NCBI GenBank assembly: GCA_037379345.1
Contig: CM074518.1
Coordinates: forward strand, 27,156,001 to 27,220,000
Source of the DNA: Perna viridis
Taxonomy: Eukaryota
Reading direction: 5' to 3'
DNA: 64,000 nt
Position numbers and translations under genes: made by a program. A model generated the notes under the pieces. It saw nothing but the letters and a program-made list of their open reading frames with translations. It had not been told where the DNA came from and did not search any database. Shown here piece by piece: positions 781-62,826 of this stretch (its first letter is position 1; every line of letters starts with the position of its first letter).

Positions 781-3444
781 ATTATTGCCAAAGGAAAATA
801 TAGCATATGTAGATCAAAAAAGCATCATATGATATATGGATTTTTCTACACCATGAATCACCTTACCATAGACAGTGTCTGAATTTTATATTAACTGATA
901 CTTAAAACTGGTGTATCCAACTCATCTGCTCTATTCCGATGCTTATTTTTTATCGTTTTGGTATATCAGTTATTATGTTGTTGTAAAAAGGAGAATATTG
1001 CACAAATGGGTTAGATCAGTATTGTTGTTATAAATGCCAACATTGTGAGATTTACAATGTTGGTACGTTCTGAATGAGCGTTTTGCTGAATACTGAGATC
1101 TGTTTTCTAGAGACAAGGAGTAATATTTTTTTATTTTCAAGGAACATTTTTGTAAGAGAATTAGCTTTTCTGAGCTTCAAGATGTAAGCAAACTGAATTA
1201 TCTATCGGATGGTACGTTCGCATGATCGTCTGTTTCTAGTTCCAAAATCTGCAACTCCTCTAAAATTGAGACGCTTTCATCGTGCATATAATGCAAAGAG
1301 TCGAATTTTATAGGACTATAAATGGGAAACTCTAAAATCCCATTTTGATCAATTCCCCATTGAAACTAGTGTTTTCATATGGTAAATATGTCAATTTCAG
1401 TCATTTTGCTATTTGGTAATGATACATATGTTGCATATGACTGTAAGTGTTACTGCAACTGCTGTGGTACTGCCTTAGAAATTAGGCTACGTGATGAATA
1501 TTATATATTTGAATATACTTTAACTCGAAAAATTAAAAAAAACAAAACTAAAAGAAATTGCTTTTAGTCACAACGAGGTATTCAAAAAAAAAAAAATACA
1601 AAAATGCTTCAGTTTATTTTTTGCGAAAAACGTATTCGTAAATGGTAGGCCCAAGGGTACCTGAAAATCTTAATTGAGTTGATGAGTGAGAGGGTGTTCG
1701 GGAATGATCTCAGCCCACATACTTTGAATGTTTTGAATGTTGTGGAAACGCTTTCCTATATTCGATACTGCGATCATTTGCCGATATGCGATTTTTGAGT
1801 AAAAATGTATAATGTCATACATCTTTGAATTAAGAGAAAATATTTTTTCTCTTTTAGCAATTCAGTCTCAGTAATACATTTTTCATTTTGGTCACGCGTA
1901 CTTTCCTTTTTATCAGTTCGGTCTTTTTGTTATGGTTTGGTTACAGGTAAGTTTTAACTGGTTAGCTTTGTCTTATTAGATTAAAAAAATAGAACTATAA
2001 ATTGTGAATTCATAATCTTAAAAGATTGAATAGTAGACTATGTTTCTACAAATAGAATCTTAAATCATACAAATATTCAACAGATTTATCTATCACATTG
2101 ATGGAAATCTTAGGTTTGTTTTTTCAAAACAGTAAATATAAGCTCGAATAAGATTTTTTATACAAAGAGTAGTTCGTATCTAAACTTAACATTGTCTAAA
2201 CCGCTTATGTTATGTATTTGTTGGCTTGTCAACTAATAAACGGAAGAAACACAAACACAAATACAAGGTTATCTTACATTTGCGAAATAATAATTGGTAT
2301 TCGTCTTTGGTCCGAATAAACAATAATAATTACATTTACGTATAATACTTGGTTGTTTGAGTGAGAGGAAGATAAAATTATGACAGTAGAAAATTTATAA
2401 TAATGTACATCATAATTCACAAAAATTTGCAGTATCTCAAATTACAAGACTTTGGAATCGATTAACTGCTTGCCATAACCACTTAGACTTTTTTGTACCA
2501 CAATAGACCTTTTACAATTAGGCTTCCGGAACAGGGTTAACTTACTACAAGATTGAAGTCATCACTACAGAAGCTTAACATGTCGTCAGCATGTAACACG
2601 TGATTCGTTACGGTGTATCCATCTGCTCCATGAGAATCGATTAGTTCACAGTGACATAAATTTCCATTCATCGTCTACACCGTATTTAAATTTGTAATTC
2701 ACACCCGGAGGGAGCGGTATTCTTGGATTGTAAGATGTAAGATTTTAAAGGTAATTTTTTTCTGAATACCTTGTATATTAAATCATACGTACTATCATAA
2801 TAGCTATAGATAGGAAGCACTTTGTTTTCCTTTTTTGCAGTTAAGTAAATTTAAAGATAAGCAAAATAATTTCACTATGAGATATAATTAAGCTTTTGAA
2901 TATGTTCATTCCTTGAATCATGACAAAAGCATTCAATTGTATTTGACCAAACTTGTTATAAATTTTGCTCTAGTTTATGAAGATATCAGTCATATGATAA
3001 TGTCAAATGTTCAATTCTGTTCTCAACTTGTCTACAATGTAGACTATACAATAAACACCACTTTGCCATGGTATTTTGTGTATGATAAAAACTACTTAGT
3101 CAATACAAACCTAAATATATTTTGAAGCAATATCGTGTATCAGCTGAACTATTTTCTTTGATAAGTTTCATTTCAATATCTTTTGTTACATCAATAGGCA
3201 TAGAACCATTGTTTTGGCGCCTTTTGTTCTGTAGGATTTTGACTAAAGACTACTTTGCTTCCACAACTGCTTTTGGATAGGAGACGGATAAAGGATATCT
3301 GTAAAAGTCATTTTTGACGCATCAGGGAATAAAGCTTTTGCAACACAAGTGCAGCTTATTACATCATATTCTAATACTATAATCCATCTAACACAATAAC
3401 AGTCATTCCAGTGATAAATTCTGGTTCTGAGCAGATATTGATGC
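781..3444 (-). pseudogene. Gene F: pseudogene, partial duplicate of gene D. Exon 3 at 3111-3444, truncated exon 4 at 1934-1971, TM exon deleted
   Basis: Exon 3 is 334 nt with three frameshifts (-1, +1, -8 relative to 342 nt). About 503 bp equivalent to 24268-24770 are missing. Confidence 0.8.
2510..2685 (+). mobile_element. Decayed Penelope-like fragment (duplicated at ~25760-25940)
   Basis: ctacaagattgaagtcatcactacagaag. Confidence 0.75.
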
Positions 3445-4466
3445 CTGTTTGGTAATGAGTATTATTAGCCATTATTTAAAGATATCAATTTTATCAAGGT
3501 GAAATAAAAAGCTACATATCATCAAGTCAAATGTTTCCTTTCAATGATTGTTTATGCATATTAAACATCTGCAAGGCTGGGTTTGCAATTTTTAGAAAGG
3601 GGCACGGAACACCTAATATGTATAGAGCAATAAAGTAATTCTTCATAAATAAAGGTTAAATGTATGTAATGATAATGAAACAAAGTAACGGTGCTTAAAT
3701 GCGAGTTAACTGCCCAGTGCAGCCCATTGAATGTTTAAGTACATGCACATAATAATTGCTGATTAATTTCTACATATACAATGTTTAGATGTTCAACATG
3801 AAGTGTAGGCAATTATATTATATTTACAACCACATTTAAGTTTGAATAGTAGTAATTATTAATTTAAAATGTTAACAAAACCGATAAAAAAACACTGCGG
3901 CACGAAATTATGTGTTGACTAATCAGAAACATTCGTTATTTTTAACATTGTACATGTACTATTTTACGATATACGATAAACGCTACATGATTTACATAAT
4001 ACGATGAACGATACACGATAAATAGGTAAGTTTTCATGATCCTAGTACTGTACTGTATTATGTTTGAAAGAATCTCATAATTAAAACTAAGCAGATGCTG
4101 TCGGTAATCGTGTCACTTTCTGATGGAGTTTTACATTTAACGGTAATACATGTGTACTTTTACTTCAATGAAATTAAAACAAATTAGCAAAAGTTGTGAA
4201 TATACATTTTGTGTTGATATGATTCAATATGAACGACACTACTCGTGCTTACCTCTTCTTGACTTTTGCCTAATCGACACGCATTTGTGCAATCGGGAAG
4301 TTACATAAACTCTAGTGGTTTGCACGAACCATTTGTTTCAATAACTGTGTATCTAAGGTACACAAGAATGTACTACGTTTACTAAATTATACACTTAGTA
4401 TTTTTTTTATGTTCGTGTGTGAATAGTTAACAAAATATTTTCCGAATTAAGATGATGCAACGCTTG

Positions 4467-22465: not shown

Positions 22466-23067
22466 TTAAAGTTACGAGTATCATCAACCTGTACATCTCA
22501 AAAATAAAAGTACAACATTAATTGTTCGCCTATTCTAATGATATCATCTTTTTTTTACGTATGCTTTGCAAACACTTGTCTTTTTAATGAATGAAACTCT
22601 GCTCATTGAAAATTGATTGATATTAAAGTAGTTTGAAATCAGAAAGATAAATAAATAGTTTTAATCTCGAATAGAACATTATTGTATGTTTATAGTAAAA
22701 AAAGAGCGTATTTGAACATGAACATGGTTGTAATATACATAATGTTGGGCGGATTATACAATTTAGAAATGCTAACTACTAGATATATGCACTAGCTTAT
22801 TAATACTTAGCTCGAAGTGACACAATGCATTTGTGTATTTCTCTCGACCAATTTTGATTTGTTTTAAGTATGTTTTGAGGTTAGTTATAATTCAAATAAC
22901 GGAACATAGCCACTACTGACATATTGGAAAGTAAATAAGTAATAAAAATCAGTTTTTTTTTCACAATATGAAGACAACAATTACATGTTCTTAACTACAG
23001 TGCGTTAATTGTATGGTCTGCCATAATTACTTAAAATTCAGATATTTTTATTCATGTACGATATTAT

Positions 23068-26000
23068 ATTATTGCCAAATGAAAATATAGCATATGTAGA
23101 CCACAAAAGCATTATCTGATCCATGGGTTTTTTTTCTACACCATGAATCACCTTACCATAGACAGTGTCTGAATTTTATATTAACTGATACTTAAAACTG
23201 ATGTATCCAACACATCAGTTCTATTCAGATGCTCAGTTTTATCGTTTTGGTGCAACAGTTATTATGTTGTTGTGAAATAGAAAATATAGCACAGATGGGT
23301 TAGATCAGTGTTGTTATTATAAATGCCAACATTATGCGATTTACAATGTTGATACGTTCTGAATGAGCATTTTTTCTTAATACTGAGATCTGTTTTCTAG
23401 GGGCAAGGGTAATATTTTTATTTTGAAGGAGAATTAGCTTTTCAAAGCTTCTTGATGTAACCGAATTGAATTATATTTCGGATGGTACGTTCGCCTGACC
23501 GTCTACTCCTAGTTCCAAAATCTGCAACTCCCCTAGAATAATAGAATTTGAGACACTTTCATCGTGCATATAACGTAAAGGGTCGAATTTTATAGGACTT
23601 TAAATGGGAAACTCTAAAATCCCATTTTAATCGATTCCCCATTAAATCTAGTGCTTTCACATGGGAAAATATGTCAATTTAAGCCATTTTGCCATTTGGT
23701 AAGGATACATATGTTGCATATGACCGTAAGTGTTACCGCAACTGCTGTGGTACTATCTAAAAGCTTAGACATTGGGCTACGTGATGAATTCTATATATTT
23801 AAATTTACTTTAACTCGGACAATCCCCCCCAAAAAATAATAATAGAAATTGCTTTTTGTCACACCGCTCCCCTAACAAACAAGAAACAAAAACAAACAAA
23901 AACAAAAAAAAAAAACAAAAAAACAAAAAAAGCAAAAATGCTTCAGTTTATTATGCGAAAAACGTATTCGTAAATGGTAGGCCCAATGGTACCTGAAAAT
24001 GATAATTGAGTTGATGAGTGAGAGGGTGTTCGGGGATGATCTCAGCCCACATACTAATCATTTTGAATGTTGTGGAAACGTTTCCCTATATTCGAGATTG
24101 CGATTATTTGCCGATATTCGATTTTTGAGTAATAATGTATGTCATACATCTTTAAAGTGAGAGAAAATAATTGGTTTTTTTTCTCTTATAGCAATTCAGT
24201 CTCAGTAATACATATTTCATTTTTGTTACGCGTACTTTCCTTGTTATCAGTTCGGTCTTTTTGTTATGACTCTTCACTGTATCATCCTTTTTTAAAGTAT
24301 TCATTTGGCTATAGTATTTGCGGTATTTTAGTAATTCTTAATTTTGATTAATTAAATGCTCCATGAAAAATAAATAATTCGTACCTTGATCTTATAATTA
24401 GATGAAGTTGAAACAATTACAAGAAGTATAAAGCCACCAATCCCACGACCAATAGCATATTTTATCGAATCTGAAGTTCAAAAAAATGTTATACAATATA
24501 TAATGATGGAACATCGAAACATGGCTATGAAATGTAGTTGAGTTCCTTTAATTGAATTTAATCTGCCATTAGTAATCATTTTACTTTGATATATTTCTTG
24601 TCCATGCGAGTATACATAAAAAGCAAATTTCAGTACTTGCTATATAAGGAATATACTATTACATATTGCTTTTTCATACTGCACTGATAGTACATGTATC
24701 AAAACAAAATAATACCTTGTTTACCATTCCACATTCTGTTTATATTTTCTGATGTTGTCTCCCTACGTTCGGTTTGGTTACAGGTAAGTTGTAACTAGTT
24801 AGCGTTGTCTTATTAGATGAAAAAAATACAACTATATATTGTATGTGCTTGTGAATTAATAAATCTTGAAAGATAGAATAGTAGACTATTCTTCTACAAA
24901 TAGAATCATAAATCATACAAATATTCAACAGAATTTATCTATCACATTCATGGATAGCCCCGTGCAAGTCCGAGTGTTAAAAGAACAGGCCTACAGCAGC
25001 GCTAAGCTTGTCGTATAAGGCGACTGAATAGTGCTCAGAAACCCAGCCGGGGGCTAGGCGCTCTGCCAACAGAGCAACTGGGATGTGTGTCCCAGGTGGT
25101 GGAATGGGGTACCCCTGGCGTGTTACATGCTGGGGTTGTCAGGCTATAATACGGAAAACCTGACCGCAAACCATAGTGGTGCACCGTGTTGGGAAAGACG
25201 CCACGTTCCTCGCACGTTTAAGAACCCTGCTGTGGTATTCGATAGGAGTAGGAACCTTTGCGCTCCGCCACAGGAGGCTAAATTGCCCGGTCTTACCCAT
25301 CCCCCCTTTTTCCAGTGGCAATAAAAATTTGTCGACCCTATTATCCTTGTAACCCATCCTTTTTTTTTTCATTTCATTTTCATTTTATCATCCATTTCAC
25401 GTTCATTATCTGAATATAGCTGAAATATTGCTGCTTGGACGTTAAACCCCAACAAACAAATACACAGAGTAGTACATTTCTTAACATTGTCTAAACCGCT
25501 TATATTATATATTTGTTGGCTTGTCAACTAATGAACGGAAGAAACGCAAACACAAATACAAAGTTATTTTACATATGCGAAATAAGAATTGGTATTCTTC
25601 GTTAGTCCGAATAAACAATAATAATTACATTTACAAATAATGTCAGCAGAAAATTTATCATAATGACTTGCATCATAATTCACAAAATTTTTCAGTATCT
25701 CAAATTGGAATCGATTAACTGCTTGTCGTAACCACTTAGACATGTTTGTACCACAAAAGACCTTTTACAATTAGGCGTCCGGAACAGGGTTAACTTACTA
25801 CAAGATAGAAGTCAATACTACAGAAGCTTAACATGTCGTCAGCATGTAACTCGTGATTCCTTGCGGTGTATCCATCTGCTCTATGAGAATCGATTAGTTC
25901 ACAGTGACATAAATTTCCATTCATCGTCTAGCCCGGATTTAAATGTGTAATTCTTACCCGGAGGAAGCGGTATCCTTGGATTGTAAGATGTAAGATTTTA

Positions 26001-26859
26001 AAAGTAAAATTTGTCTGAATACCTCGTATATTAAATCATACGTACCATCATAATAGCTATAGATAGGAAGCACTTTGTTTTCCTTTTTTTCAGTTAAGTA
26101 AATTTAAAGATAAGCAAAATAATTTCACTATGAGATATAATTAAGCTTTTGAATGTGTTCATTCCTTGAATCATGACAAAAGCATTCAATTGTATTTGAC
26201 CAAACTTGTTTTATATTTTTGTCTAGTTTATGAAGATATCAGTCATCTGATAATGTCAAGTGATCAGTTTTGTTATCAACTTGTCTCAATGTAGACTATA
26301 CAATGAACACCACTTTGCCATGGTATTTTTTTTCGTATGGTACAAACCTAAAAAGATTTTGAAGCAATATCGTGTATCAGCTGAACTATTTTCTTTGATA
26401 AGTTTAATTTCAATATCTTTTGTTACATCAATAGGCATGGAACCATTGTTTTGGCACCTTTTGGTTTGTTGTTCAGTAGAATTTTGACTAAAGACTACTT
26501 TGCTTCCACAAGTGCTTTTTATAGGAGACGGATAAAGGATATCTGTAAAAGTCATTCTTGACGCTTCAGGGAATAAAGCTTTTGCAACACAAGTACAAAT
26601 CCATCTAACACAATAACAGTCAATCCAGTGATAAATCCTGGTTCTGAGCAGATATTGATGCCTGTTTGGTAATGAGTATTATTAGCCATTTCTTAAAGAT
26701 ATCAATTTTATCAAGGTGAAATAAACAGCTACAAATCATCAAGTCAAATGTTTCTTTTTAATGATTGTTTATGCATATTAAACATCTGCTGGGTTTGCAA
26801 TTTTTAGAAGGGGCACGGAACACCTAATGTGTATAGAGCAATAAAATAATTCTTTATAA
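23068..26859. repeat. Segmental duplication copy 2
   Basis: Same as 781-3648 plus the retained 24268-24770 segment and a SINE-like insertion. Confidence 0.95.
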
Positions 26860-29916: not shown

Positions 29917-30107
29917 NNNNNNNNNNNNNNNNNNNNNNNNNNNNNNNNNNNNNNNNNNNNNNNNNNNNNNNNNNNNNNNNNNNNNNNNNNNNNNNNNNNN
30001 NNNNNNNNNNNNNNNNNNNNNNNNNNNNNNNNNNNNNNNNNNNNNNNNNNNNNNNNNNNNNNNNNNNNNNNNNNNNNNNNNNNNNNNNNNNNNNNNNNNN
30101 NNNNNNN
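29917..30107. other. Assembly gap (N run)
   Basis: 191 N. Confidence 1.
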
Positions 30108-37600: not shown

Positions 37601-38095
37601 GTAAAACGTTGAGACAGTAGTGCCCGCTATGTTGTTTTCCATAAAGTTCGATTTGTTTGATAGTTTTGTTTGTTTCTTTTTCCTTTTTTATTTTTCGTTT
37701 TTTGTTTTTCTTTAATTTGTGCATATGTAGTCAGATGTACTTTTGAAAGTGTTCTGAATTATCATAGATCGTTCTGTTGTTACCATGTGTTAGATAAATA
37801 CATGTAGCGTAATCAGCAGATGAATATACTGAAACAAAGGTAATGAGTCTGTAAACAATTATTTGAATGAGAGAGTAGAATTCGTTATTATATCTTTTGT
37901 TTATAATCTACAAATAATTATAACATATACAATTATCTATAATATGTCTTGGTATAAATGGATTGTTTTCAAAATTAATTGAACAGATAGAAGCTTATAT
38001 CAAAAATTGAAAATTATCATAAACAATTTACGAACCTGGAAGAGATTTGCTCGCTGCACCATCAGAACAAAGAGTACATTCAGCAACGAATAATC
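31186..38095 (-). CDS. Gene C: receptor-family member. Exons 38095-38036, 36961-36608, 35690-35457, 32067-31974, 31696-31186; premature TAA at 31486-31488 shortens the tail
   Basis: Exons 2-5 are open with consistent phases (60, 354, 234, 94 nt). The tail frame continues past the TAA with homology to the gene A tail. Confidence 0.75.
31974..32067 (-). CDS. Gene C exon 5, TM helix (LYLAVGGAAVGILMALLVGISIVRYI), GC donor
   Basis: ttgcag acceptor; AG|GCAAGT donor gives exactly 94 nt and phase 2, as in paralogs. Confidence 0.8.
32185..32753 (+). mobile_element. Penelope-like 3' fragment in gene C intron 4
   Basis: ISQLKRYARACRNYADF; shared terminus. Confidence 0.88.
33045..33845 (-). mobile_element. 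Older Penelope-like RT fragments in gene C intron 4
   Basis: DLPSMYWIPKL, FRYIDDVLSL, ASYLDL. Confidence 0.8.
34030..35418 (-). mobile_element. Penelope-like element copy in gene C intron 4, with internal deletions
   Basis: Collinear with 46570-48385; ends at the shared terminus CCCTTGATTA. Confidence 0.9.
35457..35690 (-). CDS. Gene C exon 4: LKC (8th Cys) plus Ser/Thr-rich mucin-like stalk
   Basis: 234 nt phase 1-1, G|GTATGT donor; peptide ISNSTTNSASAMSSTDLRNQTTYNTTS. Confidence 0.8.
36608..36961 (-). CDS. Gene C exon 3, Cys-rich domain
   Basis: ctaaacag acceptor, G|GTTTGT donor, 354 nt; FC, LDG, CTC, CGS, SC, LPI, DTRYCF conserved. Confidence 0.9.
38036..38095 (-). CDS. Gene C exon 2 (GLFVAECTLCSDGAASKSLP)
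   Basis: tttttag acceptor, G|GTTCGT donor, 60 nt phase 1-1. Confidence 0.75.
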
Positions 38096-38228: not shown

Positions 38229-41200
38229 TTTTGATTTTGATTACGTTTGAAAATTATCCGTACATGGTATGAACGCGAACAACAGAAAAGAAAGACGATC
38301 TACATAACAAATGTAATAAACCGAATACGATAAATTTCATATAGAACTAAAGGTAAGGAAAACAATACCAAATTACTCAAACTCAAACATATAAACTCCT
38401 TCAAAAATAACGGGATTGACATCGGAAGTTTAGGCATGTCCTGTCTCATCTTGCGAATAAGTATAATCCAGTAATAGTCTAACAAAGATAATACAGCTCC
38501 TTGACACGAGTTATAAAGGGAACTCATGGCTATCAGACACATGAAGGTATTTTTCTGAAACGTTATCTTCGATAATACATTTTTATTTGTTTGGATAGCG
38601 AAACTGATAAATCTTTTCGAAACGGACAAATCTATCTTTTTATTACTTCTGCGACATTTCTTTTTTCAGGGAATACTTTTAGGGATATCAAAATCAATGT
38701 TACCTCTTAGCCTGACACCGTTTGGCGTACTCGCTAATAAGAATATTAAGTTCCCTAATAGTATGTGACAAAAATGCGATCAGGTATCGATTTAAGCATA
38801 CAAATAAATAATGTATGCAAAATTATGTTAAAATTAAAAAAAAATCATTTTTTTTCTTGTTTATAAAAAAGTAAGAGAAAATACTATAGTCATAGTTTCC
38901 TATGACATATAAACCAAATAAATACCTTACACACCAGGCAATATTATGTAAATGACTCATACTTTCAAAGACAATATGTAATAATAATGACAAACAACGG
39001 ATGATCAAATTTTGAAGAGTGTTGTTGTTTCGAAACATTTTCTTTATTAACCAATTAAATACAATTTTAATAGAATGAATATGATGGCATAAAATAGGCT
39101 AGTGATTATATAGTGCCATAAAAATCGTGTCATTCAAATGCGCACCTATGGATATGTAAAAATGAAAACAAAACAAAAAAAACTCACTATGGATTTTCTG
39201 AAGTTTTATATCGTGCTTGCAATCAATTCCACTTTCGTTAAAAAGTCAAAGAACCAAATATTTTATTTCATCGATTTGAAGTCTTCATAACATGTTCCAT
39301 TGAACACTTGTGAATCTGACCTTTAATTAATAGGAGGATTGTGTGGAGGCCATGTAAAATTGGCGATCATATTAAATAATCAAAACCATCCAATACAGCT
39401 GTCGTGGGTGGCTCTGTTCTAAGGTTTGTAAAGCTATTTTTAGTCGTTTTTCTTTATTTCAGGGTAAACATAAATAATTTACAAAGTTCAACCAACATTG
39501 CGGTTGCTGTCGTTACTATTCTAACACATAACATATCGATCCACTTTTGCAAAACATCATAGAACATATAAAACTGGACCTGTCGACCATTTTTTTTAAA
39601 TTCCAGACCAGCTAGGTTTCTTAAATTTTGCAGTGCCCTGTATTCGAACTAAGTGTTCATACTTTCCCGTGTAAATCTTCAGAGTAATGCCAACTTTCGA
39701 AAACGTTTCATTAAAATCCTCCGTTCGTTTCCGAGAAAACATGTGAGCACCTTCACTGATAAGAGTATTACTTGCACAGATGAAACAATGAAGAACTATA
39801 TGTCCCGACACTTTGTTTTCGGGGACTTGATTAAACGGACGGGGCCAATCACTGAATCTTACACTGGTCATATGTATTGGAAATAGATCGAAAAATTAAA
39901 TTAGATTGGCTAATATGTTCAGCGCTTTATTTGAATACATATCCTTACAAACAAAAATAGAAAACCTCCCTTACCCCATGTTAATGTTTAGTCAATGGAA
40001 TTGCACTTAAATATAGACATACAAATAACACTAAATCACACATAATAAATGTGAAGTTCCACAAGGACAATAAATGCAATGAACCATTCGATTCGCTGGA
40101 ATTGGAAAGTCTTTTAATCATTTTTTTTTTCATTTTTTTTGTTTTGTTTCGTTTTGTTTTTGTTTTTGTTTTTGTTTTTTTTGAAAAAAATATCAAGTAA
40201 TTTCTATAACTGAAATGTTGCAGGAATACAATGACCAATATCATAATTCAATATGTGAAGAAATCTGAATTCAAAAATAGCTATACTCGACGTCACATAT
40301 AGCACATTTTCGAATTGAAGCTCTACTTTTTAAACCGTCGGGACTTACCGCTAGATATGTCACTCTTTTATTTAATCAGAAGATAGTTCGCATATATGCA
40401 TGATGTGTTAGTACCAACGAGTCGCTTATTGGCTTAAATCGTGCGTAAAAAAATCCTTACGGGAAAATCCGCCATGTTGGTTTCTACGGGACGATTTGTT
40501 TACAAACGAAGTTCGTAAGTTCCCGTCGAACTCCGGTGACAATCGTCTGCTTGATCAATTTCTCAGTATTGTACGTTGTTCGCATAAAATAAATCGGAGA
40601 TATCCGAACTAACCCCGAAAGGCATTCTGGGTTCTTCGTTTTTTGGACAAGCCATTTAAACGTAAACAACATCTCCTAGCAACCCGATCACTGTAAACAT
40701 GGCCGACTTTTGACAATGTAAATATTGGGACCGAGAATTAAAATCGCACCAGAATTTAACGATTCAATGTATAGGGAGAATCCGTTTGGCTAAACGAATG
40801 AGCAAGTCAATTAAGACAATTTAGACGACGGTAGATGTAAAAAATGTCGTAGAAAATATTTTTATTCAAATTTTAACAGTATTTTATTATGTGACGCCGA
40901 GTATAATTATCATTATCTTGTATTTTTTGTAAATAACGGAAAAAGAAACAAGACATTATGCGGTAATGTGGTATCAGAGTAATATGTTATAATACCGACA
41001 TTTTTTGTCGTATTAATCACCATCCGATGAAAGGTTGTAATCTATGACAGATTACATTAGTCAGTACATATACTATAGTCGAACATCATTTTACTAGAGT
41101 GAGATACACAATATCATAAACAATTACACTCACGTAATTCACATGCCTGAATCAACGTGAAGCATAACATACTTAAATAGTACTTGATTCGTCCATTAAA

Positions 41201-42781: not shown

Positions 42782-42996
42782 NNNNNNNNNNNNNNNNNNN
42801 NNNNNNNNNNNNNNNNNNNNNNNNNNNNNNNNNNNNNNNNNNNNNNNNNNNNNNNNNNNNNNNNNNNNNNNNNNNNNNNNNNNNNNNNNNNNNNNNNNNN
42901 NNNNNNNNNNNNNNNNNNNNNNNNNNNNNNNNNNNNNNNNNNNNNNNNNNNNNNNNNNNNNNNNNNNNNNNNNNNNNNNNNNNNNNNNNNNNNNNN
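42782..42996. other. Assembly gap (N run)
   Basis: 215 N. Confidence 1.
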
Positions 42997-45168: not shown

Positions 45169-45214
45169 TGTTGAGAGTGACAAGTAATTATAAATGTGAG
45201 GCAATATTGCTAAG

Positions 45215-51207: not shown

Positions 51208-52522
51208 CTTGAGGTTTTGACCAGACATAAAATAGCAATTAATATCAAAAGTCCTACAGCAGCCCTACTGATAATGCCTATATCGATGAGCATTTTTCTT
51301 CCTGAAACGAAACGATTTTGTTTTCCTTTTAAACGACTTCGGGAAATTTGATACGTTTTTATTAAAACAATAGTATTAATACACATCAATCTAAACAAAA
51401 GTGTATTTTTTCAGTCTTAGAGTTGAGGGATCGAATATTAATCATCTTATGTTCCGTTCATAATCGATTGATAGACAAGTTTCTAAATATGTTTTTTTTT
51501 CTCAATTGAACAAGGTCCCCATTAAAGTATACATTAAGGATTCCGCTTGAAGGTGCCAGCCTGTGAAATTATCTGCAATTTACTCACTAAAACAACAATT
51601 GTTGTCGAAAAATATATTTTAGAACTGGTACCTAGTACAATGAGCATATCGCATTTTGCATAATTGAGAAGCAAATAACATTTTTTTCTCAATTCTAAAT
51701 ATCAGTTTTGTATCTCAAAGTTGTACTTTTATTGATTGCAGTAAAACCTTCCCTTTGTTGTTATACTTTGTAAATTCGCTTAGAACATCACATCAAGTAT
51801 AAAATGGAAATGCTGCATTCATTCTGAAACTTACTGGTGACTTCATTTTGTGAGTTATTTGCTACTGTCTGGCTTTGTTGTGATGATGCTATTTTGTTTA
51901 CATTATAAGTTGATTCGGAAAATGAAATATCGGCTATTGAAGTTTTCATTTCTTAGCCTTTAGCCATGACATATTTAATTCATAAGGGCTATCTGTCAAT
52001 TTAAAAGCATAAAAAGAATTTCGAGACATCTCTTTCATCTGTAAATTCTATCTGAATGTCTATAAAATTGCTCTTATATTTCGTCACAACATTTAATATT
52101 CATGCTGATACGGCTGTCATATATTTTACCAAGTTTGTGTTCCCCCTTTTTGATTGGTGATGAATTGAAAAAAAATGTATCAATTTCAGAGTCCTGGTTA
52201 GTTTTTGCAAATAATAAGACAGCATGTACAGGTCCCATTTTATTTTTGGTCAAGAACCATGTTCTATGTTTTTATTGGAATTAAAGAATATGCACAAAAT
52301 ATGCCCTATTTGATTTAGCAAATAATAACATAGGAACTAACATATTTATTTGTTTTGTGTAACATGTTATAACCAATTTTAAATTAACTGCATTGCTATT
52401 GTGTCTTGTCAAATTATATAACTAATACAAAAGAACATACTGATTTCCAATTTAAAACAGTAGCTTGCGTTTCCATCAGGTCTTTCTTTTTGTAGAATAA
52501 TCTCTATATTTGCAATGGGCAA
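51208..52522 (-). pseudogene. Gene B: pseudogene of the receptor family. Exon 3 remnant 52441-~52522, frameshifted stalk exon 51835-51992, intact TM exon 51208-51301
   Basis: LPIANIEIILQKERPDGNASYCFKLEI|GTATGT matches the domain C-terminus. The 158-nt stalk exon is not a multiple of 3. The 94-nt TM exon reads IGIISRAAVGLLILIAILCLVKTSR|GTAATG. The 5' part of exon 3 is replaced by a Penelope fragment. Confidence 0.8.
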
Positions 52523-52686: not shown

Positions 52687-54247
52687 ATATGCTGACAGTT
52701 TACAAAAATATATTATTCAAGGAGATAGTGTTAAAATATACTTTCCAATAATCATATTTAGAATTATAAAGAAGCTTTGTTTTACTACAACCTATACGTG
52801 ATTTCATAATGAATGAGAGTTGAGATTTTCTTCATTTATAACTGATTAATTTTTCCGCAATTTCATATTCACGTACATTTTCACCATGTGAAATAATATG
52901 TTTTACTGCAGTCCAACGACAGTGTTTGTATGGGATGAATTTCCAATGTTATAGAGTATGGGGCAACGGGGCATGGTGAATGGAGCAAGGCTATTCTTTA
53001 GATTGATCAATCAGAAAATTGGTTCTGCCTTTTCTGCATACATCAGTCTATTTTTCCATTACGGCGATTGTAAGTTTTAATAAATGTCTTTGGAATTATA
53101 TACATTTATCACAATACATAATTTGTTGACATTTTCAATATTTAGTACAATAATGTCTTATCATTACAAATTAAAAACGTTTGTGCTTTTTGTAAAATTT
53201 GTACCTAAATGACTATTTATCACAGACACTTACATGCTATTAATATTGACATATTTAACATTTTATACAATGACAGACCATAATTGAAATTTAAAGTAAA
53301 ACATATTGTTTTATAGAATTTGGGCTGAAATCACATATATGATGATAATTGTGATATGTTTAACAATGTTATTTTGGAGAATTTGAACCCAAATATATAC
53401 ATGTATGTATCGTAGCCACTCACAAGATTCTTACATTGACTTATTCAAATTTTAACAATAAAATCAGACCATTTTCAAATTAGGAGTGTTTGCACTCATA
53501 CAACTTGCAGAAATATGACATTTAGATACATTTGAGCTCAAATATATGTGTTGCATCCACACATATCATACAAATATTGACAATATAAATTTGTAAACTA
53601 TGATATCTTACCATTAAGAATGTTAAAACTATTCGTCTGCATTATATTTGAATAAATATTTCATGTTGTATACTTTCATTTGAAACACATTTATATTTGA
53701 CACAACCACACTCATGATGCATCTATTGTTAATTAAGACTTACATAATTTTAAACTGATCTGAATAAACTAAATTCATATAGGTATCATCATATAGCCCA
53801 AGATCATTATATATCCCAAGGTCTCAGATTTTAAATAGTACCAACCAATTTGCTGAAGCACTTTTGGATTTGTAAAAATGCAAACATATCTACTCCACCA
53901 AAAAATCGCTAAATTTGACATTTTTTTCAATGCCAAAACCCCTAGCGTATTTTTGCTTCAGTAAAAATGACTTATTTCTATTTTATAGTCATATCACTAT
54001 TGATACTTCTATGGTCCTTTCGTTTCCCTATTAAAAGTCACGTAAATTAATTCGAACTGTTTATTTGTTTTTGGGGAAGGCACAATGTGTCTACTACCTT
54101 TAAGGTGAAATATAAAGCATTTGTTCGTCAATAAATACGTCGGCTTTTGGATACAGTTCCGTTTCTAAAGTGCCATTATTGAAGGACTTTCTGCATTTCT
54201 CCAGAAATACCTAGAGCCAAAGAAAAAGTAATATCGCTCTTTGTAAG

Positions 54248-54680
54248 TAACGATCCATGAGTTCATTGGTGACGACCATAAAACTTCTGTAGTGATGACT
54301 TCAATCTTGCAGCAATATGACCCTGTTCCAGAAGCCTATTTGTTAGAATTCTAGCGCGATACAGAAAGGCTTCGTAGTTTCGGCAAGCTCTGGCATAATG
54401 TATGAGTTGTGATATGAACACTCCATACACAGGTGCTGAAGGGGTGTTGCCATAGAAGAAAGAAATGCTGACAATTCTGAATGAAAAGTTATTTGTCCTA
54501 AAGTTTGGTCAATATTTTTTCTTTACCATCGATTTCTTAGTGTAGGTCAAGATATGGGGCTGACTTCACAGTGTCTGTAGTATCCTTTATCTCAAGTTCT
54601 TTGGCGTAGATGCGATGTATCAAATCCCCAAAATTAGGATTGTTCAAAGATAATATGTGATTAATATGGCGGAAACTGAG
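54248..54680 (-). mobile_element. Penelope-like RT C-terminal fragment
   Basis: Collinear with 46870-47290. Confidence 0.88.
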
Positions 54681-57600: not shown

Positions 57601-58573
57601 TAATCTATGTGTACATATTTTAAGTAATTGTGTACGATTGATACGCTAAAGTAAGCATATTTTAAGCATTGTGTATCATGGTTATTTGTTGTTCGTATCA
57701 TTAAGATTAAGATAACATTCGTAAATATTGATTGCACTTTTGCGGTATGTTCGTCAGATTCTTCTGCAATTTTTCAACTGGATATTAGGCAATGAAAACT
57801 GTTAGAGAATTTTTCCTGATGTTGGTCGCATTTTCAAATTACTTTGTCTTCTCAGCTGAATACATACAAATAATGCTTAAAGGATCGATAAATGTAAATA
57901 TGCAGACAAAAAACTCTCTCATAATACTAGTCGTTCATTGTATTAGACAACGTCTTGAAAATAAATGTCAAAATGTGAAACATTGTAAATGTATAGGTAG
58001 GAATTTGACTTATTCATTTACACATATTAGGAACCTCTGAACCAATTGTTTCATAAAATTGCACTGTAATCAACTTCCAATTTATAAATCAGACTCTCTG
58101 TCTCAACTTTTTTTTGTTGCGTGATCAATTGAATATGTAATCAATTTTTCGAAATGATATGACAATTTCCACCCATTACGTGATTCTAGTGGGGCCGATA
58201 TGGAAATGTACTGTAAAAGTACCAGTACTCAAAACGATTCAACCTGGTTATTGAGGAAGATATTTACGTAGGTATATTGGTATAACGTAGCTATAAATAA
58301 TCATACAAACAAATTCATTAGTATTTCTTAGAAAGAAATAACGCTGTTGTACAATAGAAACTACCTCTTTTTTATTTCTAAAACATCAATTTTAATAAAT
58401 GAATTGATATAAAATATATAACATAATATTGCATAATACTAGTTATCAAGTTAAGCAATTATCCAAATCTTTAAAATATCTGAGCCTCGCTATAAAAATT
58501 CAGCTTTTCAAGTCTTCAAGAATTCGTTTTTCTGTATTTGTTGACAACTGCATGAACATCGTTTTTATGTTCT

Positions 58574-58958
58574 TTAGCTTTGTTTATCAACAACTGCATA
58601 TTCACATCCATCATCTCCCGGTGCAATTACATGTTTAACAGAGGACGAACTGTCATCCCTGTCCTCATATGGTTTTTCGCCCTCATTATCATAGGATTCT
58701 TTTTCATCTTTGATTTTGTCATTGTTACGAGTCGCATTTGACTTAATTTGATAATTCGGTAGTTCATTCAAGTCTATTTCGCTACAGTTTGTCTCTACTT
58801 CATAAGCGACATGATGTATACCCTCTTTCTTCAATTCTTTACGACTGTTTATAATATCATGTACTCCATCATCTTCATGCAAAGCGTATAAACTGTTGTA
58901 CTGAAGTCCATATTCATCGTTGTCCTCTTGTTGTTCGTTATTTGTCTTTGCTTTCCTC
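58574..58958 (-). CDS. Gene A exon 6, acidic cytoplasmic tail (EYGLQYNSLY ... EYAVVDK)
   Basis: tacatag acceptor phase 2; homologous to gene C tail (DYDLQYNTLY, HMIAPGTDG/HVIAPGDDG, VVDK). Confidence 0.85.
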
Positions 58959-61900
58959 CTATGTAAATTAAAACATTTTTACACTATGAAATACTGTCAT
59001 AAACTTTTATTTTCAACGGAACTGTATAAATAATATAGTTCAACATTCTAAAATCATTTCGAAATTCCACTGTTATTTTCGAGATATATTGAATTGAACA
59101 CTAGTACTAGTACTGGTAAGATCATTGCATATGCATTAAGATTTTAATTAAAGAATTCCTTATTTACTTCAACACATGATATATTGATAGTCATTACTAA
59201 TAGTAAGACCAATCAATTAAGTTATATTTTTGGTAGGCCTTGCCATAAGGATTATTTTATGTTTCTCTTTATATGTTAAGGCTTTCAACATAAAGGTCTA
59301 CACAGCCAAATTTTATTTGCACTTTCAATGACAAAACTTAATAAAAGGAATTGTAGAAACTTCATTCAATCGCGACGCATTGGAGTTTTAAAAGATGTCA
59401 TATAAATATTTCTAACCAATAGTTCCCTTAGCAGTCGGATCATTTCATTTTTTCAACGTTTCCTATGATAAATTATTAATCGTAAGATGTAAAGTGCAGA
59501 ATGCTATCCGTCCCCCCTTTCAAGGGAATATATCGTTTTAACAATATCCTATTAACATTCTTGTATGCTTATCATTAATATCATTTCATTAACTGAAAGT
59601 TTCTTTCTTTATTATATTATGGCTTCCAATATACTATGAGGAAGGTGAAATCTTAAACGCTCCCGAAAAAAACATATGCATTCAAACACCTAAGTCCTTT
59701 CATAATTTTTGTCAGCCCTGTGATCATCATCTTTTAAAGTTGTACAAGGTGTCATGATATGCGTTTTTTTTTATATTTTCATAATGCAAACTCCTATCGT
59801 CATGGTCTAATATTTGTATGGGCCGAAATGTCCAACTTCGGTAAGGAACTGAGGGTTGTCATGGTTCGAAATGTCTTTGAGTCGAATTGTCCGGTATTGA
59901 TAAGCTGATTACGAACACAACATTCGGGTGTCATGTTTTGACCATCCGTATATAGGAATGATTTCAGAGGAGACTATAATTTTTACACTTTTAAGGACGA
60001 ACGACGAACAACAGACAAAAGATTAACTTTGAACGATAGGGGATTGCAGCAGCACAAACAACCAAACAAAACAAAGCAATATTCTGCTGCACCGTGTGGA
60101 TGAACTTGATGCTAATATATGTTTTTCTTTTATTGTGTAAGATTATATTCATACAATGGTTTTAGTGTAATAATCTGTTGAAAGTATGCAATCTGATTAA
60201 ATTGGGAAGAAAATTATCATTACCTTGATTTTATTATGAAAAAAATTATTATCAGTACAATAAGTCCAACTCCACCAAACCCACTGCCAATGACTATGTA
60301 CAGATTGTGGTAGCTTTCTGCAATATTCAACATACATACGAACAATTATCATACTAACAGGGTTGACAAAATTAAAAGATAAAACAAGTTCGTTGAAGTC
60401 AATGTTGAAGAACAATATTTTAAAAGCATAATATAAGAAATTAAAAAAAAGAAAATTAGATTAAATTCATGATCAAATTATACTCATGCCAAGATTACAA
60501 GTCTAACACAAATTTTCAAAACATAAACGGGTATCATATAAATTCACATCAGCGATAATATAAAACGTATATTTTAACTTCATGAAATGGCAATAAAAAT
60601 AGGTAAAAAACATATAGTTAGTTCCCCATTTTAAGGATGTGTTTAGAAATAAAAACAAATTGTATTAATCCTTCCCATGTTCTGGCATTCTATTAAATCG
60701 TTACCGTCATCTTTATTCCTAAGTTTATCGTTTGTATTTCCTTTTGGACTCCCTTGCCATAAATCAGTCTGATTACAAGTAATATTTAGCCTATTACCTC
60801 GGTCTATAAAATTAGAGAGATAATGTTCAGTATTTTGAAGACACTAAAGTGCATAGATCCAGTAAAATAATGCAAGTTATAAATATTGTTTACATATGGT
60901 TGATTCAGATCAATTTAAATTAATTATAAGCATCACTTGTATCATTTGCATAACTAACAATTGCATTGATTATTGTAAAAACCTAAGAACCTTCGTTAAG
61001 CTTTTGTATACGCTATTCACTAAATTGATTATTTCATTGTTATTTATATGCTATTTTGTACTTACCTATTGAAATGCTGAAACAGTACCTTGATTCTGCA
61101 GCAAGGGTTTCTTTGATAAATGTAATATCAAGATTTTGTGACACATTAATGGGCATCGAACCGTTTATAGCACAGCTCTGTGTTATACTTTGAAACGCAT
61201 GCTGATAAAAAATTACTTTGCTATTACAATTACTACTTTTCAATGGAGGCCAAAATTGGTATCCTTGAAAATGGATGTAATTGGCGGTGTCGAATACTGC
61301 TTTCGCTGTGCACGTACAGCTTTTGACTGATTCGTTGGTGCTAAGATTTCCGTCTATCACAAAAATACTCTTTTGAGAGACTGTTGAACCAGAGCAAAAT
61401 CTGATCACTGAAAAACAACATGATCTGAGTTACTCTCCTTTGTCAAGCTTTTAAAATATGTATAAACATTGTACAAATACGAATTCATATTCAAAATTGG
61501 TTTAAAGGGATAATGCTTTTTGCGGATATTGATATGCTTTTGATAAAACATAAGAAATATGAAAGCAATATGGAATGAGTTTTGTTTGTGCGCTCTAAGT
61601 ACATTTTTGTCACATTAACATGAATTAATTATCTGCAACACAACGGCATTTCAATATTGTCGAATGTAAACTAAATAAGCAATATGTTATCGCGTCTAAA
61701 CGCAGTATTTTCCGAAGAGACCGTGAATTAAACAAGTGTTACCTGAAATTATTTTTTTTCTTTTCAAAATAAGTTAAAGTCAGAGGTCAATTCGCGTATG
61801 ACGTGGACTTTTGTTTTTTCGATGATTTGAATATTTGTATTGTAATGGATATCAAATTAAAACGGCACTTACAAGGGAGGTTCCTGTTATTTGCTTCATC

Positions 61901-62826
61901 TGCACAATCGCTTCCGACCGATGAGGATGTTACTAAATCAATAACTATAAAAAGAAAGTACAAACTTCAGACTTACTTATTTGTATACGACAATTCAAAT
62001 CATCAAGTGAAATATGATTTATTTTTTTCAGAGGATTCAAAATTGCTACTTAGCGTTTTATTTTCTGTTGCCGTCAGAGATTGATTCAAATGTAGTATCA
62101 CTTCTATTATAATTGCAAGAGAATAAGAGTATCGATGAAAACTAAAATAACAGGTGCAATTAAAGAAATGCACAAAAAAGACGATCAACTGAATAACATG
62201 TAGGGCAAAATTAAAATATCTATAGGTCTTATTATGCATAAAAAAATCAAAGAAAACAAAACGCCCCATCATTGTGTGTTATTAAATGATTCTAATAATA
62301 ATATTGTGTTGAAGGTTTCCAGAAGATCTTTCATTTTTTCAGGATCTAGATTGAATAAATACCACTACGGTAGTAACAAGTATTGAGGTAGAGCTGGATA
62401 CCTTCTTTTACAGCTGTGTATATAGAAGTTAGAAGTTTTGTAAGTGGTTTGGAGGTACATTTTGTAGATCCAGCTATTTAGCGTTAAGTGTATGGATTCT
62501 TGTCGAGTTTAGGAATCAAGTACATAGACGGTAAATCACAATCGTCTCATCGGTAGATAAATCAAAATAGGACAGCACAAGTTTGTGGTTTTCCACTATT
62601 TCTTTTCGGAGAGTGTTGTAGCAGTATAGGTCTGGCTACAAAGGCAATAAATCGATTGTACAATAAGTGTAAATTGAGTACTACTTACAGTTACAATATT
62701 AGATATAAGGAGCTTACAGATATAGAGTTTCTACTATTCTTAGAAATTAAACATACCTACGTTGTTGGTAACACAAAGTATCAGCATTCGCATTTGTATT
62801 ATTAATTTTCCGTATTTATGACCCAT
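58574..62826 (-). CDS. Gene A: intact 6-exon type-I transmembrane receptor-like protein (353 aa; signal peptide, 8-Cys ectodomain, short stalk, TM, Tyr-motif tail). Exons 62826-62757, 61944-61873, 61407-61066, 60803-60705, 60317-60224, 58958-58574
   Basis: All introns GT-AG; phases 1,1,1,1,2; summed length 1062 nt = 354 codons with no internal stop. Exons 2-6 have clear paralogs elsewhere in the window; exon 1 is assigned on phase and signal-like character. Confidence 0.8.
60224..60317 (-). CDS. Gene A exon 5, transmembrane helix (LYIVIGSGFGGVGLIVLIIIFFIIKSR)
   Basis: tgcag acceptor, AG|GTAATG donor, 94 nt phase 1-2, same length as TM exons of genes B and C. Confidence 0.85.
60705..60803 (-). 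CDS. Gene A exon 4 (DRGNRLNITCNQTD...), 8th Cys plus short stalk
   Basis: tttatag acceptor, GTAACG donor, 99 nt phase 1-1; homologous to LQLTCNQTE at 24716-24808. Confidence 0.85.
61066..61407 (-). CDS. Gene A exon 3, Cys-rich domain (FC...IDG...CTC...NC.S...SC..NGSMPI...RYCF)
   Basis: tttttcag acceptor, GTAAGT donor, 342 nt phase 1-1, open frame (ORF track 61040-61408). Confidence 0.9.
61873..61944 (-). CDS. Gene A exon 2 (IDLVTSSSVGSDCADEANNRNLP)
   Basis: tttttatag acceptor, GTAAGT donor, 72 nt phase 1-1. Matches ECEDEANNTNLP (27141-27206), ACTDYANVSGLP (14329-14388) and LCSDGAASKSLP (38036-38095). Confidence 0.85.
62315..62632 (-). mobile_element. Penelope-like RT N-terminal fragment in gene A intron 1
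   Basis: Collinear with 47715-48025 (CDLPSMY..PKL, AGS.KC). Confidence 0.8.
62757..62826 (-). CDS. Gene A exon 1, signal-peptide-like MGHKYGKLIIQMRMLILCVTNNV
   Basis: ATG, phase-1 donor G|GTATGT. An acceptor-like ttttgtag lies 5 nt upstream, suggesting a non-coding exon further right. Confidence 0.6.

Follow-up and report, generated by a model that had tools for sequence, protein, structure and literature searches.

The 64-kb stretch of Perna viridis DNA analysed here (hereafter the window) is a slice of a head-to-tail tandem array on the chromosome-scale contig C8, and carries part of a real, transcribed and fast-evolving family of single-pass membrane glycoproteins that, judged by sequence comparison, appears restricted to pteriomorph bivalves (mussels, scallops and oysters). 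We think it probable (roughly 0.6) that the array encodes pteriomorph type-I glycoproteins acting as cell-surface recognition receptors with a CUB-like domain and tyrosine-bearing tails, where we infer 'receptor' and 'recognition' from architecture alone. The structure, transcription and splicing of one member, gene A, are seen directly in RNA, and the array turns over through duplication and decay.

Results

A preliminary description of the window proposed a hidden tandem cluster of six members of a diversifying type-I membrane receptor family. Profile search and tblastn bore out six minus-strand loci of one family (A, B, C, D, E and F, with E weak), five of them (A, C, B, F and D) exon-3-derived; the array, however, is far larger than the window. 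On C8, family exons cover ~26.96-27.33 Mb, with at least 18 exon-3 copies within the 62% of C8:26.94-27.36 Mb covered. Genome-wide, there are 13 to 17 exon-3 matches, all on C8 except two singletons at C6:12.16 Mb and C4:4.73 Mb, and every tail-exon match (15/15) is on C8. The loci belong to a single family of type-I membrane proteins and are arranged in tandem, head to tail. In other bivalves the family is not hidden, since RefSeq annotations there already predict members as 'uncharacterized'.

Gene A runs from 58357 to beyond 64000 and consists of the following parts.

63996..64000, continuing past the window end, minus strand: 3' end of the non-coding first exon (RNA contigs)
62757..62831, minus strand: first coding exon, ATG at 62826, signal-peptide-like start, phase 1 donor (joints 61944/62757, 4 runs)
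61873..61944, minus strand: exon 2, 72 nt, phase 1/1, end of the signal peptide and first ectodomain Cys (joints 61407/61873, 61944/62757)
61066..61407, minus strand: exon 3, 342 nt, phase 1/1, six-Cys domain, predicted jelly-roll (CUB-like) (RNA joints, alignment, model)
60705..60803, minus strand: exon 4, 99 nt, phase 1/1, last strand with Cys (NITC) and short glycosylated stalk (joints 60317/60705, 60803/61066)
60224..60317, minus strand: transmembrane (TM) exon, 94 nt, phase 1 in, phase 2 out (RNA joints)
58357..58958, minus strand: tail exon and 3'UTR, stop at 58574-58576 (RNA contig, sequence)

Five GT..AG introns in the coding region and a sixth upstream were found in raw stranded RNA reads and in RNA contigs of three other runs, and gene A is spliced in all four runs, which come from four studies. 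The joints fit the predicted phases (1,1,1,1,2) and 94-nt TM exon. A 697-nt RNA contig covers 58357-58957 and is joined to 60223, linking the tail to the TM exon; at the other end, RNA contigs continue beyond 62833 into letters matching 63998 onward, with a GT donor at 63994-63995. The product is ~353 aa long (length and phases were obtained by arithmetic, the exons of A and C having been searched singly rather than as a joined protein). Gene A keeps every cysteine, every splice site and an open frame, and its exon 4 contributes 32 residues, almost no mucin stalk. Inside intron 1 lies a degenerate reverse-transcriptase fragment (62328..62650, minus strand), not part of the gene, with tblastx matches to other transposon copies and very high RNA depth.

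Gene C has the layout of gene A, with a premature in-frame TAA (31486-31488) inside the tail exon; its first, second and fourth exons are candidates.

38304..38340, minus strand: candidate first coding exon, hydrophobic start, phase 1 donor
38036..38095, minus strand: candidate exon 2, 60 nt, phase 1/1
36608..36961, minus strand: exon 3, 354 nt, phase 1/1, six-Cys domain (profile search, tblastn, alignment)
35457..35690, minus strand: candidate exon 4, 234 nt, phase 1/1, Ser/Thr/Asn-rich stalk
31974..32067, minus strand: TM exon, 94 nt, GC donor (AG|GCAAGT) (sequence)
31189..31696, minus strand: tail exon (sequence)

The TAA shortens the tail to ~69 residues, with 99 further codons open downstream. 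It is also present in two copies outside the window, giving a short-tailed form in three copies, and the 3' half of gene C is itself duplicated at 94.5% identity, TAA included. No charged residue was found in the TM segment of gene C. The remaining loci and the two assembly gaps are as follows.

23067..27206, minus strand: locus B, pseudogene
27141-27206, minus strand: locus B, exon 2-like
26340-26661, minus strand: locus B, exon 3 with frameshifting deletion
24768-24809, minus strand: locus B, exon 4-like, stop inside
24385-24470, minus strand: locus B, TM exon, 86 nt
780..3648, minus strand: locus F, pseudogene
3103-3475, minus strand: locus F, exon 3 spread over three frames
1934-1972, minus strand: locus F, exon 4-like
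51208..52522, minus strand: locus D, fragment
52442-52522, minus strand: locus D, exon-3 stub (last ~27 codons) fused to transposon-derived sequence
51208-51301, minus strand: locus D, intact-looking TM exon, 94 nt
52850..52912, minus strand: locus E, weak tail-exon remnant (VKHIIS..EY..EK), low confidence (E ~0.1-0.2)
29917..30107, no strand: assembly gap between the gene C 3' end and the locus B 5' end
42782..42996, no strand: assembly gap between locus D and gene C

Locus F is a duplicate of B (84-92% identical), the frameshifting exon-3 deletion being common to both; its tail sits just beyond the window, and no tail exon was found for B. The 94-nt TM exon noted earlier in three loci is splice-flanked in A, C (GC donor) and D, that of B being 86 nt. 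An exon 2 candidate for locus D was rejected as the transposon-derived sequence (GPCSQFLVESEL) that is fused to the exon-3 stub. Neither gap is crossed by a family exon or reading frame, so frame continuity across them is not at issue; the flanks of the gap at 29917-30107 are collinear with a paralogous segment. Most family copies in the window are dead.

The status first assigned to each locus held: the frame of A is open throughout, C has the tail stop, and B, F, D and E are frameshifted duplicates or remnants. Outside the window, the neighbours L002, L006, L007 and L008 have an open exon 3 and full tails with both YAVV motifs, and further copies contain stops. L006 and L007 are duplicates, 90-97% identical, with an intron divergence of 3-10%. 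Birth-and-death turnover, as originally proposed, shows in one intact gene that is expressed, in three copies of a short-tailed form and in frameshifted duplicates with common lesions.

A search of 1.84 billion proteins returned relatives in 44 cluster representatives, the named ones coming only from Mytilus, scallops and oysters.

Mytilus trossulus: XP_063400020.1
Mizuhopecten yessoensis: OWF54800/54802/54805, XP_021350202-205
Saccostrea: XP_061167560.1, XP_062616619.1
Crassostrea virginica: XP_022291757.1
Argopecten irradians: XP_069133002.1

These proteins are computer-predicted only and annotated 'uncharacterized', 'mucin-5AC-like' and similar; several scallop relatives lie on common contigs. 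The shared plan is a signal peptide, a ~140-residue domain with 6-8 Cys, a stalk (mucin-like in most), one TM helix and an acidic tail. Across 11 paralogues the domain follows the pattern C..CxC..CGS..C..(T/S)RYC, with five Cys invariant and one nearly so, and the Cys of the pattern are also invariant among 51 sequences including scallop, oyster and Mytilus; exon 3 holds six, exons 2 and 4 one each. Exon 3 of A and C is 35-36% identical with all six cysteines retained, close to the one-third estimated by eye for a Cys-constrained ectodomain. The earlier failure to recognise a named domain also held. Pfam gave no ectodomain domain in the window exons, 10 full-length relatives or 51 alignment members, and PDB sequences gave no match to the family profile at E up to 10.

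The Cys domain is predicted to be a CUB-like jelly-roll beta-sandwich, with Z up to 7.9, which is not decisive. AF2 models reached a pLDDT of 82.5 for the exon-3 domain of gene A and >90 for the domain of an oyster homologue. Their best structural neighbours were ColG CBD (Z 7.9), Neto2 CUB (7.5), meteorin and spermadhesin CUB (7.4) and Kremen CUB (7.2); all matches are below Z 8, a range that the structure-search tool terms common arrangement. Against CUB domains (Neto2, meteorin, spermadhesin, Kremen, MASP, C1s) the models gave Z 6.6-7.5 and rmsd 3-3.8 A over 100-111 residues, but non-CUB jelly-rolls, namely bacterial collagen-binding (PPC), GOLD and C2-like domains, score equally. CUB clusters appear among the language-model neighbours of the domain. 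Foldseek against PDB returned nothing at E <1e-3, and the CUB profile (PF00431) matched neither the window exons nor any of the 51 members (51/51 without a match) at E up to 5. CUB domains have four cysteines, paired C1-C2 and C3-C4, and often a Ca-binding Tyr/Glu/Asp site. Ig domains were found neither by Pfam (window exons, 51 members) nor by structure, where the neighbours are jelly-rolls and the top 50 include no Ig-domain receptor.

The tyrosine-motif tails proposed for the family were found, as a single TM helix followed by a Y(A/S)VV(D/E/N)K tail. Near the membrane the tail has (D/E)YGLQYNTLY, an ITIM-consensus sequence, and it carries EYAVV(D/E/N)K once or twice. Gene A has LQYNSL and a single EYAVVDK, its second YAVV module lying past the stop and out of frame; L002, L006, L007, L008 and L013 have two YAVV-type copies. 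Conservation of the motifs extends across mussel, scallop and oyster, the Mytilus, scallop and oyster relatives having LYAVVDK, LYAVVNK, KYAVVNK, LYSVVNK or MYSVVDK. The ITIM expression [ILVS]xYxx[IVL], which is loose, is matched ~20 residues past the TM by LQYNSL (A), LQYNTL (C, L013) and IMYNTL (L002), and LQYNTF of L006 and L007 falls outside it; such a fit is no demonstration of inhibitory signalling. A strict ITAM, defined as Yxx[IL]x(6-9)Yxx[LI] (PMC9546547), was rejected, as no cluster tail matches it; full tails read YAVV-x10-12-Y(A/I)VV, with Val at +3 and a spacing longer than that of an ITAM. YAVV, YNTL and YTAI also fit the YxxPhi sorting signal. A literature search found no papers on the tail motif strings, and a general one on ITIM/ITAM in bivalves found nothing specific.

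The ectodomain had been called diversifying. Changes in it, in alleles and young paralogues alike, are mostly non-synonymous and concentrated in the N-terminal half, although the counts are small. The alleles of gene A differ by 12 non-synonymous and 1 synonymous changes in exons 2-3, and by 1:1 in the tail. Because a protein search with the exon-3 ORF of gene A gave no match at E 1e-10 in a 5.8-billion-protein set, these allele statistics come from read mapping alone, in a single mapping to gene A. At least three gene A haplotypes, differing mostly by ectodomain amino-acid changes, are present among the four runs, and polymorphism is 3-4%, which is high but not extreme for a bivalve. Between L006 and L007, dN reaches 0.11 over the 55 codons that open exon 3, compared with 0.02 over the remainder of that exon and 0.03 in the tail. 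The N:S excess, however, is not significant against neutrality (~13:2 versus 12:3 expected), and the divergence of old paralogues is no smaller in the tail (31-36% identity) than in the ectodomain (34-36%). C-type tails differ by amino-acid changes only (6 N : 0 S). Strong purifying selection on the ectodomain is thus excluded and positive selection is not proven; the data are suggestive of diversifying selection.

Discussion

If the proteins are recognition receptors, the variable N-terminal half of the domain would bind a ligand, and the tail tyrosines, when phosphorylated, would recruit SH2 proteins and/or drive internalisation. A possible but unlikely alternative is a structural or endocytic role, as mucin-type glycoproteins of the cell surface (adhesion, barrier, scavenging) rather than as signalling immune receptors, with YAVV and YNTL as YxxPhi clathrin-adaptor sorting signals. 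Most relatives do have very long Thr/Ser-rich stalks and are automatically named mucin-like, weak Pfam echoes of CD34/podocalyxin and TMEM154 run across stalk and TM, and all three tyrosine motifs are YxxPhi-compatible. Gene A, however, almost lacks such a stalk, the (E)YAVV(D/E/N)K context is conserved well past the four YxxPhi positions, the YAVV motif is duplicated with a fixed 14-16 residues between the two tyrosines, and barrier mucins do not usually show such rapid ectodomain change between young duplicates. We regard as quite unlikely the more elaborate proposal that the C8 array is a polymorphic recognition locus of the mussel, in which hypervariable loops of the CUB-like domain would read non-self (pathogen, conspecific or transmissible-cancer cells), long-tailed copies (LQYNTL and two YAVV) and short-tailed copies would oppose each other via SH2 phosphatases/kinases, and the tail module would be reused by a second receptor array on C6.

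It is very unlikely that the array is mostly a decaying remnant, with gene A transcribed but drifting and the real function residing in the conserved singletons on C6 and C4. The death of 4/6 window loci, the stops in outside copies, the neutral-compatible ectodomain N:S and the loss of the second YAVV module of gene A through a frameshift would fit such decay. Gene A nevertheless keeps its cysteines, splice sites and open frame and is spliced in four runs, four neighbours combine an open exon 3 with full two-motif tails, and dN stays below intron divergence both in the tail (0.03) and in the C-terminal domain half (0.02). A polymorphic self/non-self (allorecognition-type) locus, with long- and short-tailed forms as paired receptors, seems highly improbable: we know of no fusion or rejection biology in solitary mussels, C-type tails show the 6 N : 0 S that decay would give, the TM of C has no charged residue, and the polymorphism is not extreme. 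The haplotypes of gene A, the identical stop retained in three C-type copies and a genomic style like that of Hydractinia ARC (PMC9546547) speak for it.

The preferred reading, cell-surface recognition receptors, gains interest from its host. Bivalves have huge lineage-specific receptor repertoires and transmissible cancers and, to our knowledge, no adaptive immunity. A receptor-like family that is expressed, polymorphic and expanding in tandem would offer a new candidate for mollusc non-self recognition and phosphotyrosine signalling; at present it counts as an uncharacterised but well-documented gene family rather than as a proven immune system, and an immune or allorecognition role is suggested by analogy only. 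The ectodomain is without a match in described sequence families, and the tail motif is conserved in all three groups (mussels, scallops, oysters). For annotation, a new domain family could be built on the Cys domain, and the YAVV(D/N)K motif of the tail could serve as a searchable signalling module.

The nearest systems are the bivalve relatives, which have the N-terminal Cys domain (profile E from 1e-24 in Mytilus to 1e-4 at the weakest) and place signal peptide, domain, stalk, TM and tail in the order found here, many with Y(A/S)VV(D/N)K and some without the YAVV motif; most differ in stalks of hundreds of Thr/Ser residues, against the 32-residue stalk exon of gene A. CUB receptors (Kremen, Neto, neuropilin, CDCP1) carry a ~110-residue jelly-roll at the tip of a type-I membrane protein, as is predicted here (structural Z 6-7.5 over 100-106 residues), but the array has no CUB profile match and another cysteine pattern (6-8 Cys), and homology is unproven. 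The resemblance to LILR/KIR and Alr drawn at the outset stands for genomic style and not for membership; the array has no Ig domain and no strict ITAM. Alr tails contain strict ITAMs and ITIMs, whereas the array has the ITIM-consensus LQYNTL and a loose YxxV-x10-12-YxxV pair, and function is proven genetically for Alr1 and Alr2 (PMC9546547). Alr and the C8 array have in common a large single-locus arrangement of type-I membrane proteins, many pseudogenes, highly diverged paralogues, invariant cysteines, an ectodomain recognisable only through structure prediction, and tail tyrosine motifs (PMC9546547). Compared with LILR/KIR, the array has no Ig domain, no charged TM residue in its short-tailed form and no known adaptor, but it shares with them tandem birth-and-death and long- and short-tailed forms side by side.

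Gene A is transcribed and spliced

To examine gene A, one of six minus-strand loci (A to F) of a bivalve type-I membrane receptor-like family, we aligned the raw reads of one stranded RNA-seq run, together with Logan contigs from three others, to positions 57900-62900. As seen in these data, the coding region of gene A is interrupted by five introns, with CT..AC joints (GT..AG on the minus strand) at 58959-60223, 60318-60704, 60804-61065, 61408-61872 and 61945-62756, which supplies the spliced RNA that the preliminary description had called for. These joints show gene A to be real and spliced.

Exons of gene A, bounded by RNA joints
62757-62831, minus strand: first coding exon, ATG at 62826
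61873-61944, minus strand: exon 2, 72 nt
61066-61407, minus strand: exon 3 (the six-Cys ectodomain exon), 342 nt
60705-60803, minus strand: exon 4, 99 nt
60224-60317, minus strand: transmembrane (TM) exon, 94 nt
58958 down to the stop at 58574-58576, minus strand: tail exon

Counting bases with the exons taken singly gave phases 1,1,1,1,2 and about 353 codons; together with the joints, this agrees exactly with the layout and phases previously read from the sequence. First mates map to the plus strand, as a minus-strand transcript would give in a stranded library of the usual kind, and introns 3 and 4 are kept in lower-depth contigs. A loose RNA end at 62833 resumes in letters located at 63998 onward and has a canonical donor, so the non-coding first exon of gene A straddles the window end. 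The stop is polymorphic (at 58576, TAA reads AAA in 4 of 5 reads of the raw run), a change that would add three residues before the next stop. Within intron 1, a degenerate reverse-transcriptase piece at 62409-62575 has a contig depth of 540-680, against roughly 30-110 over most gene A exons, with reads on both strands and its own small joints from 62543 to 62608-62612; this depth comes from a repeat family transcribed elsewhere, not from gene A.

Six related loci in the window

By tblastn and with an 11-paralogue profile, five minus-strand stretches of the window (A, C, B, F and D) were recognised as derived from exon 3, and locus E is present as a weak tail remnant, which bears out the six loci originally proposed.

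Other family loci and assembly gaps
38304-38340, minus strand: gene C, plausible exon 1
38036-38095, minus strand: gene C, plausible exon 2
36608-36961, minus strand: gene C exon 3, phase 1/1, same signals as gene A
35457-35690, minus strand: gene C, plausible exon 4, Ser/Thr/Asn-rich
31974-32067, minus strand: gene C TM exon, 94 nt, GC-type donor AG|GCAAGT
from 31696, minus strand: gene C tail exon, phase 2
23067-27206, minus strand: locus B, stop in exon 4, 86-nt TM exon
780-3648, minus strand: locus F, frameshifts beyond the deletion common to B
51208-51301, minus strand: locus D, clean TM exon, 94 nt
52850-52912, minus strand: locus E, sixth locus, weak tail remnant only
29917-30107: assembly gap between the C 3' end and the B 5' end
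42782-42996: assembly gap between D and C

The long minus-strand open frames at 61043-61429 and 36594-36965 are clear paralogues. Over exon 3, A and C are 35-36% identical with all cysteines retained, close to the one-third estimated by eye, and in an alignment of 11 exon-3 sequences five cysteines are invariant and the sixth nearly so. In gene C an in-frame TAA at 31486-31488 shortens the tail to about 69 cytoplasmic residues, which hold the first tyrosine motif only. Loci B and F are duplicates (84-92% identical) that have in common a frameshifting deletion in exon 3, between its VLDG and CTC parts, while in locus D the last ~27 codons of exon 3 are fused to transposon-derived sequence. The earlier tally of one intact member (A), one with a truncated tail (C) and four pseudogenes or fragments (B, F, D and E) thus holds, as does the 94-nt TM exon in three of them (A, C and D). 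Outside the window, at C8:27155056-27155527 of the source genome and 473-944 bases ahead of the window start, is a tail exon whose YAVVDK is intact; its position suits the tail of pseudogene F.

GC content is 27-37% across the window. No family exon or frame spans either gap, and open frames across both were rejected as runs of X. A paralogous segment at C8:27045.6-27046.2 kb runs collinear with both flanks of the gap at 29917-30107, which argues for a small gap there. One retroelement is present in many copies, at 4549-5199 (plus), 21900-22500 (minus), 29181-29498 (minus), 32233-32553 (plus), 33000-35500 (minus), 47547-48158 (minus) and 54250-54650, with ORF pieces of the LDLHLEIDG...LYDKRDDF...PAYGVFISQLIRYARAC type and an RT-like part; a copy lies in gene C, within the intron that separates exon 4 from the TM exon. 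A short repeat encoding ...GAPGPCSQFLVESELLIYFCYFVCMI... occurs at 4950-5199, 10491-10805, 34012-34237, 44965-45387, 46412-46762, 50049-50351 and 52556-52590. A copy of it took the place of the 5' part of locus D exon 3, and the apparent exon 2 of this locus was rejected as mimicry by such a copy. The open frame at 19438-19740 (minus), with a gag-like zinc-knuckle-type motif, is probably part of a retrotransposon.

The array extends beyond the window

With gene A exon 3 as query, the genome yielded 13 matches, all on chromosome-scale contig C8 at 26.96-27.33 Mb, and a tail exon as query yielded 15, again all on C8. The 62% of C8:26.94-27.36 Mb that was examined contains at least 18 copies of exon 3, as well as many TM and tail exons; the copies lie on the minus strand with one exception. 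The tandem array proposed earlier is real and much larger than the window. The 3' half of gene C is repeated at C8:27046-27050 kb with 94.5% identity and the same TAA, a third TAA-bearing C-type tail lies at C8:27111 kb, and two further family copies, L006 and L007, are duplicates, 90-97% identical over most of the region examined. Turnover of the array is birth-and-death evolution in the plain sense, as had been suggested, given the frameshift shared by B and F, the duplicated 3' half of C and the L006/L007 pair.

A wider profile added two singletons, solitary open exon-3 copies at C6:12156904-12157296 and C4:4725816-4726184 (profile E 4e-28 and 7e-19), which may be conserved, non-expanding members of the family. 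A YAVVDK-coding match also lies at C8:26735756-26735773, 220 kb below the lowest exon-3 match. It may be due to chance (39 such matches were observed, against a control count of 20), or the array may extend past 26.96 Mb.

Tyrosine motifs in the cytoplasmic tails

The full tails of five further copies (L002, L006, L007, L008 and L013) have four islands in common: (D/E)YGLQYNTLY about 20 residues past the membrane, xAYx(V/I)E, GCEYAVVEK and NDVYAVV(D/N)K. Scored by the definitions in PMC9546547, none of the tails examined contains a strict ITAM; the two YAVV motifs make a loose pair only, with Val at +3 and 10-12 residues between them. A, C, L002 and L013 each have a motif of the ITIM consensus, LQYN(S/T)L, and YAVV fits YxxPhi too. 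The gene A tail carries LQYNSL and one EYAVVDK, its second YAVV module being out of frame past the stop. The tails thus contain the tyrosine motifs previously noted.

A clearly related cytoplasmic module was found in seven tail exons of a second tandem array, C6:40949296-41215875 (L038-L042), where DSYGLTDNVLYVSS is followed by two EYAVVNK motifs whose tyrosines are spaced 23 residues apart. Nothing in this array (C6 40.95-41.22 Mb) was matched by the ectodomain profile of the C8 family, so the same tail may be joined there to another ectodomain.

A predicted CUB-type fold and relatives in other bivalves

No Pfam family was matched by the window exons, by ten relatives or by any of the 51 members of the alignment, and the family profile found nothing among PDB sequences, in line with the first reading, which recognised no named domain. 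AlphaFold2 with the family alignment returned a confident all-beta model of exon 3 (pLDDT 82.5, pTM 0.78, eight strands), and an oyster relative, modelled over its whole domain, scored pLDDT above 90. Foldseek found nothing at E <1e-3 for the domain model, its best TM-score (0.57) being to the Kremen CUB domain. An exhaustive structural aligner placed the ColG collagen-binding domain at the top (Z 7.9), with CUB domains close behind (Neto2 7.5, meteorin and spermadhesin 7.4, Kremen 7.2) and further CUB matches at Z 6.2-6.8 (MASP, C1s, neuropilin, PCPE, cubilin, TSG-6); GOLD, C2-like and subtilisin C-terminal jelly-rolls scored about equal to the CUB domains. CUB clusters also appeared among language-model neighbours, with sub-threshold scores. 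We conclude that the Cys domain is predicted to be a CUB-type jelly-roll beta-sandwich, homology to CUB being unproven.

Among 1.84 billion cluster representatives, 44 matched the family profile at E up to 1e-3. With one exception, the named matches are from Mytilus trossulus, scallops (Mizuhopecten, Argopecten, Ylistrum) and oysters (Crassostrea, Saccostrea); the sole non-bivalve, the bacterial match P0013, looks spurious. Several scallop members share contigs. Full-length relatives are built alike: a signal peptide and the Cys domain are followed by a Thr/Ser stalk, in most cases a long one, then by a single TM helix and a tail that often carries Y(A/S)VV(D/N)K. The family is thus already predicted in other bivalves, under names such as 'uncharacterized' and 'mucin-5AC-like'. 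A literature search for the tail motif found no paper mentioning it.

Variation within the family

At least three gene A haplotypes are present among the four RNA runs. In exons 2-3, the haplotype of the raw run differs from the reference by 12 non-synonymous changes and 1 synonymous (pN/pS ~3.2), whereas the count in the tail is 1:1. Changes in the ectodomain are thus mostly non-synonymous, which is suggestive of the diversifying ectodomain first proposed; however, all listed segregating sites in exons 2-3 (13 non-synonymous to 2 synonymous) fit neutrality, for which about 12:3 is expected. The pattern is far from ordinary purifying selection.

In the young pair L006 and L007, dN in exon 3 is 0.11 in codons 1-55 and 0.02 in codons 56-120; the TM exon has 0.04 and the tail 0.03, with an intron divergence of 3-10% (5-9% in the three longest aligned blocks). 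Twelve of the 14 amino-acid differences fall within residues 11-52. Small though the counts are, they suggest that the core is conserved and that the N-terminal half, between the CxC and CGS motifs, is variable. Among old paralogues, conservation is no higher in the tail (31-36% identity) than in the ectodomain (34-36%).

Comparison with known systems

The analysis bore out the initially described anatomy of the cluster in detail and added to it. To read it as a diversifying receptor cluster is reasonable, with support that reaches only as far as 'receptor-like, fast-evolving, tyrosine-motif tail'; an immune or allorecognition label is an analogy. By the tests run, the mussel family is a member neither of the Hydractinia Alr complex nor of the CUB-type receptors, the former being its closest described parallel, in style, and the latter its closest structural class.
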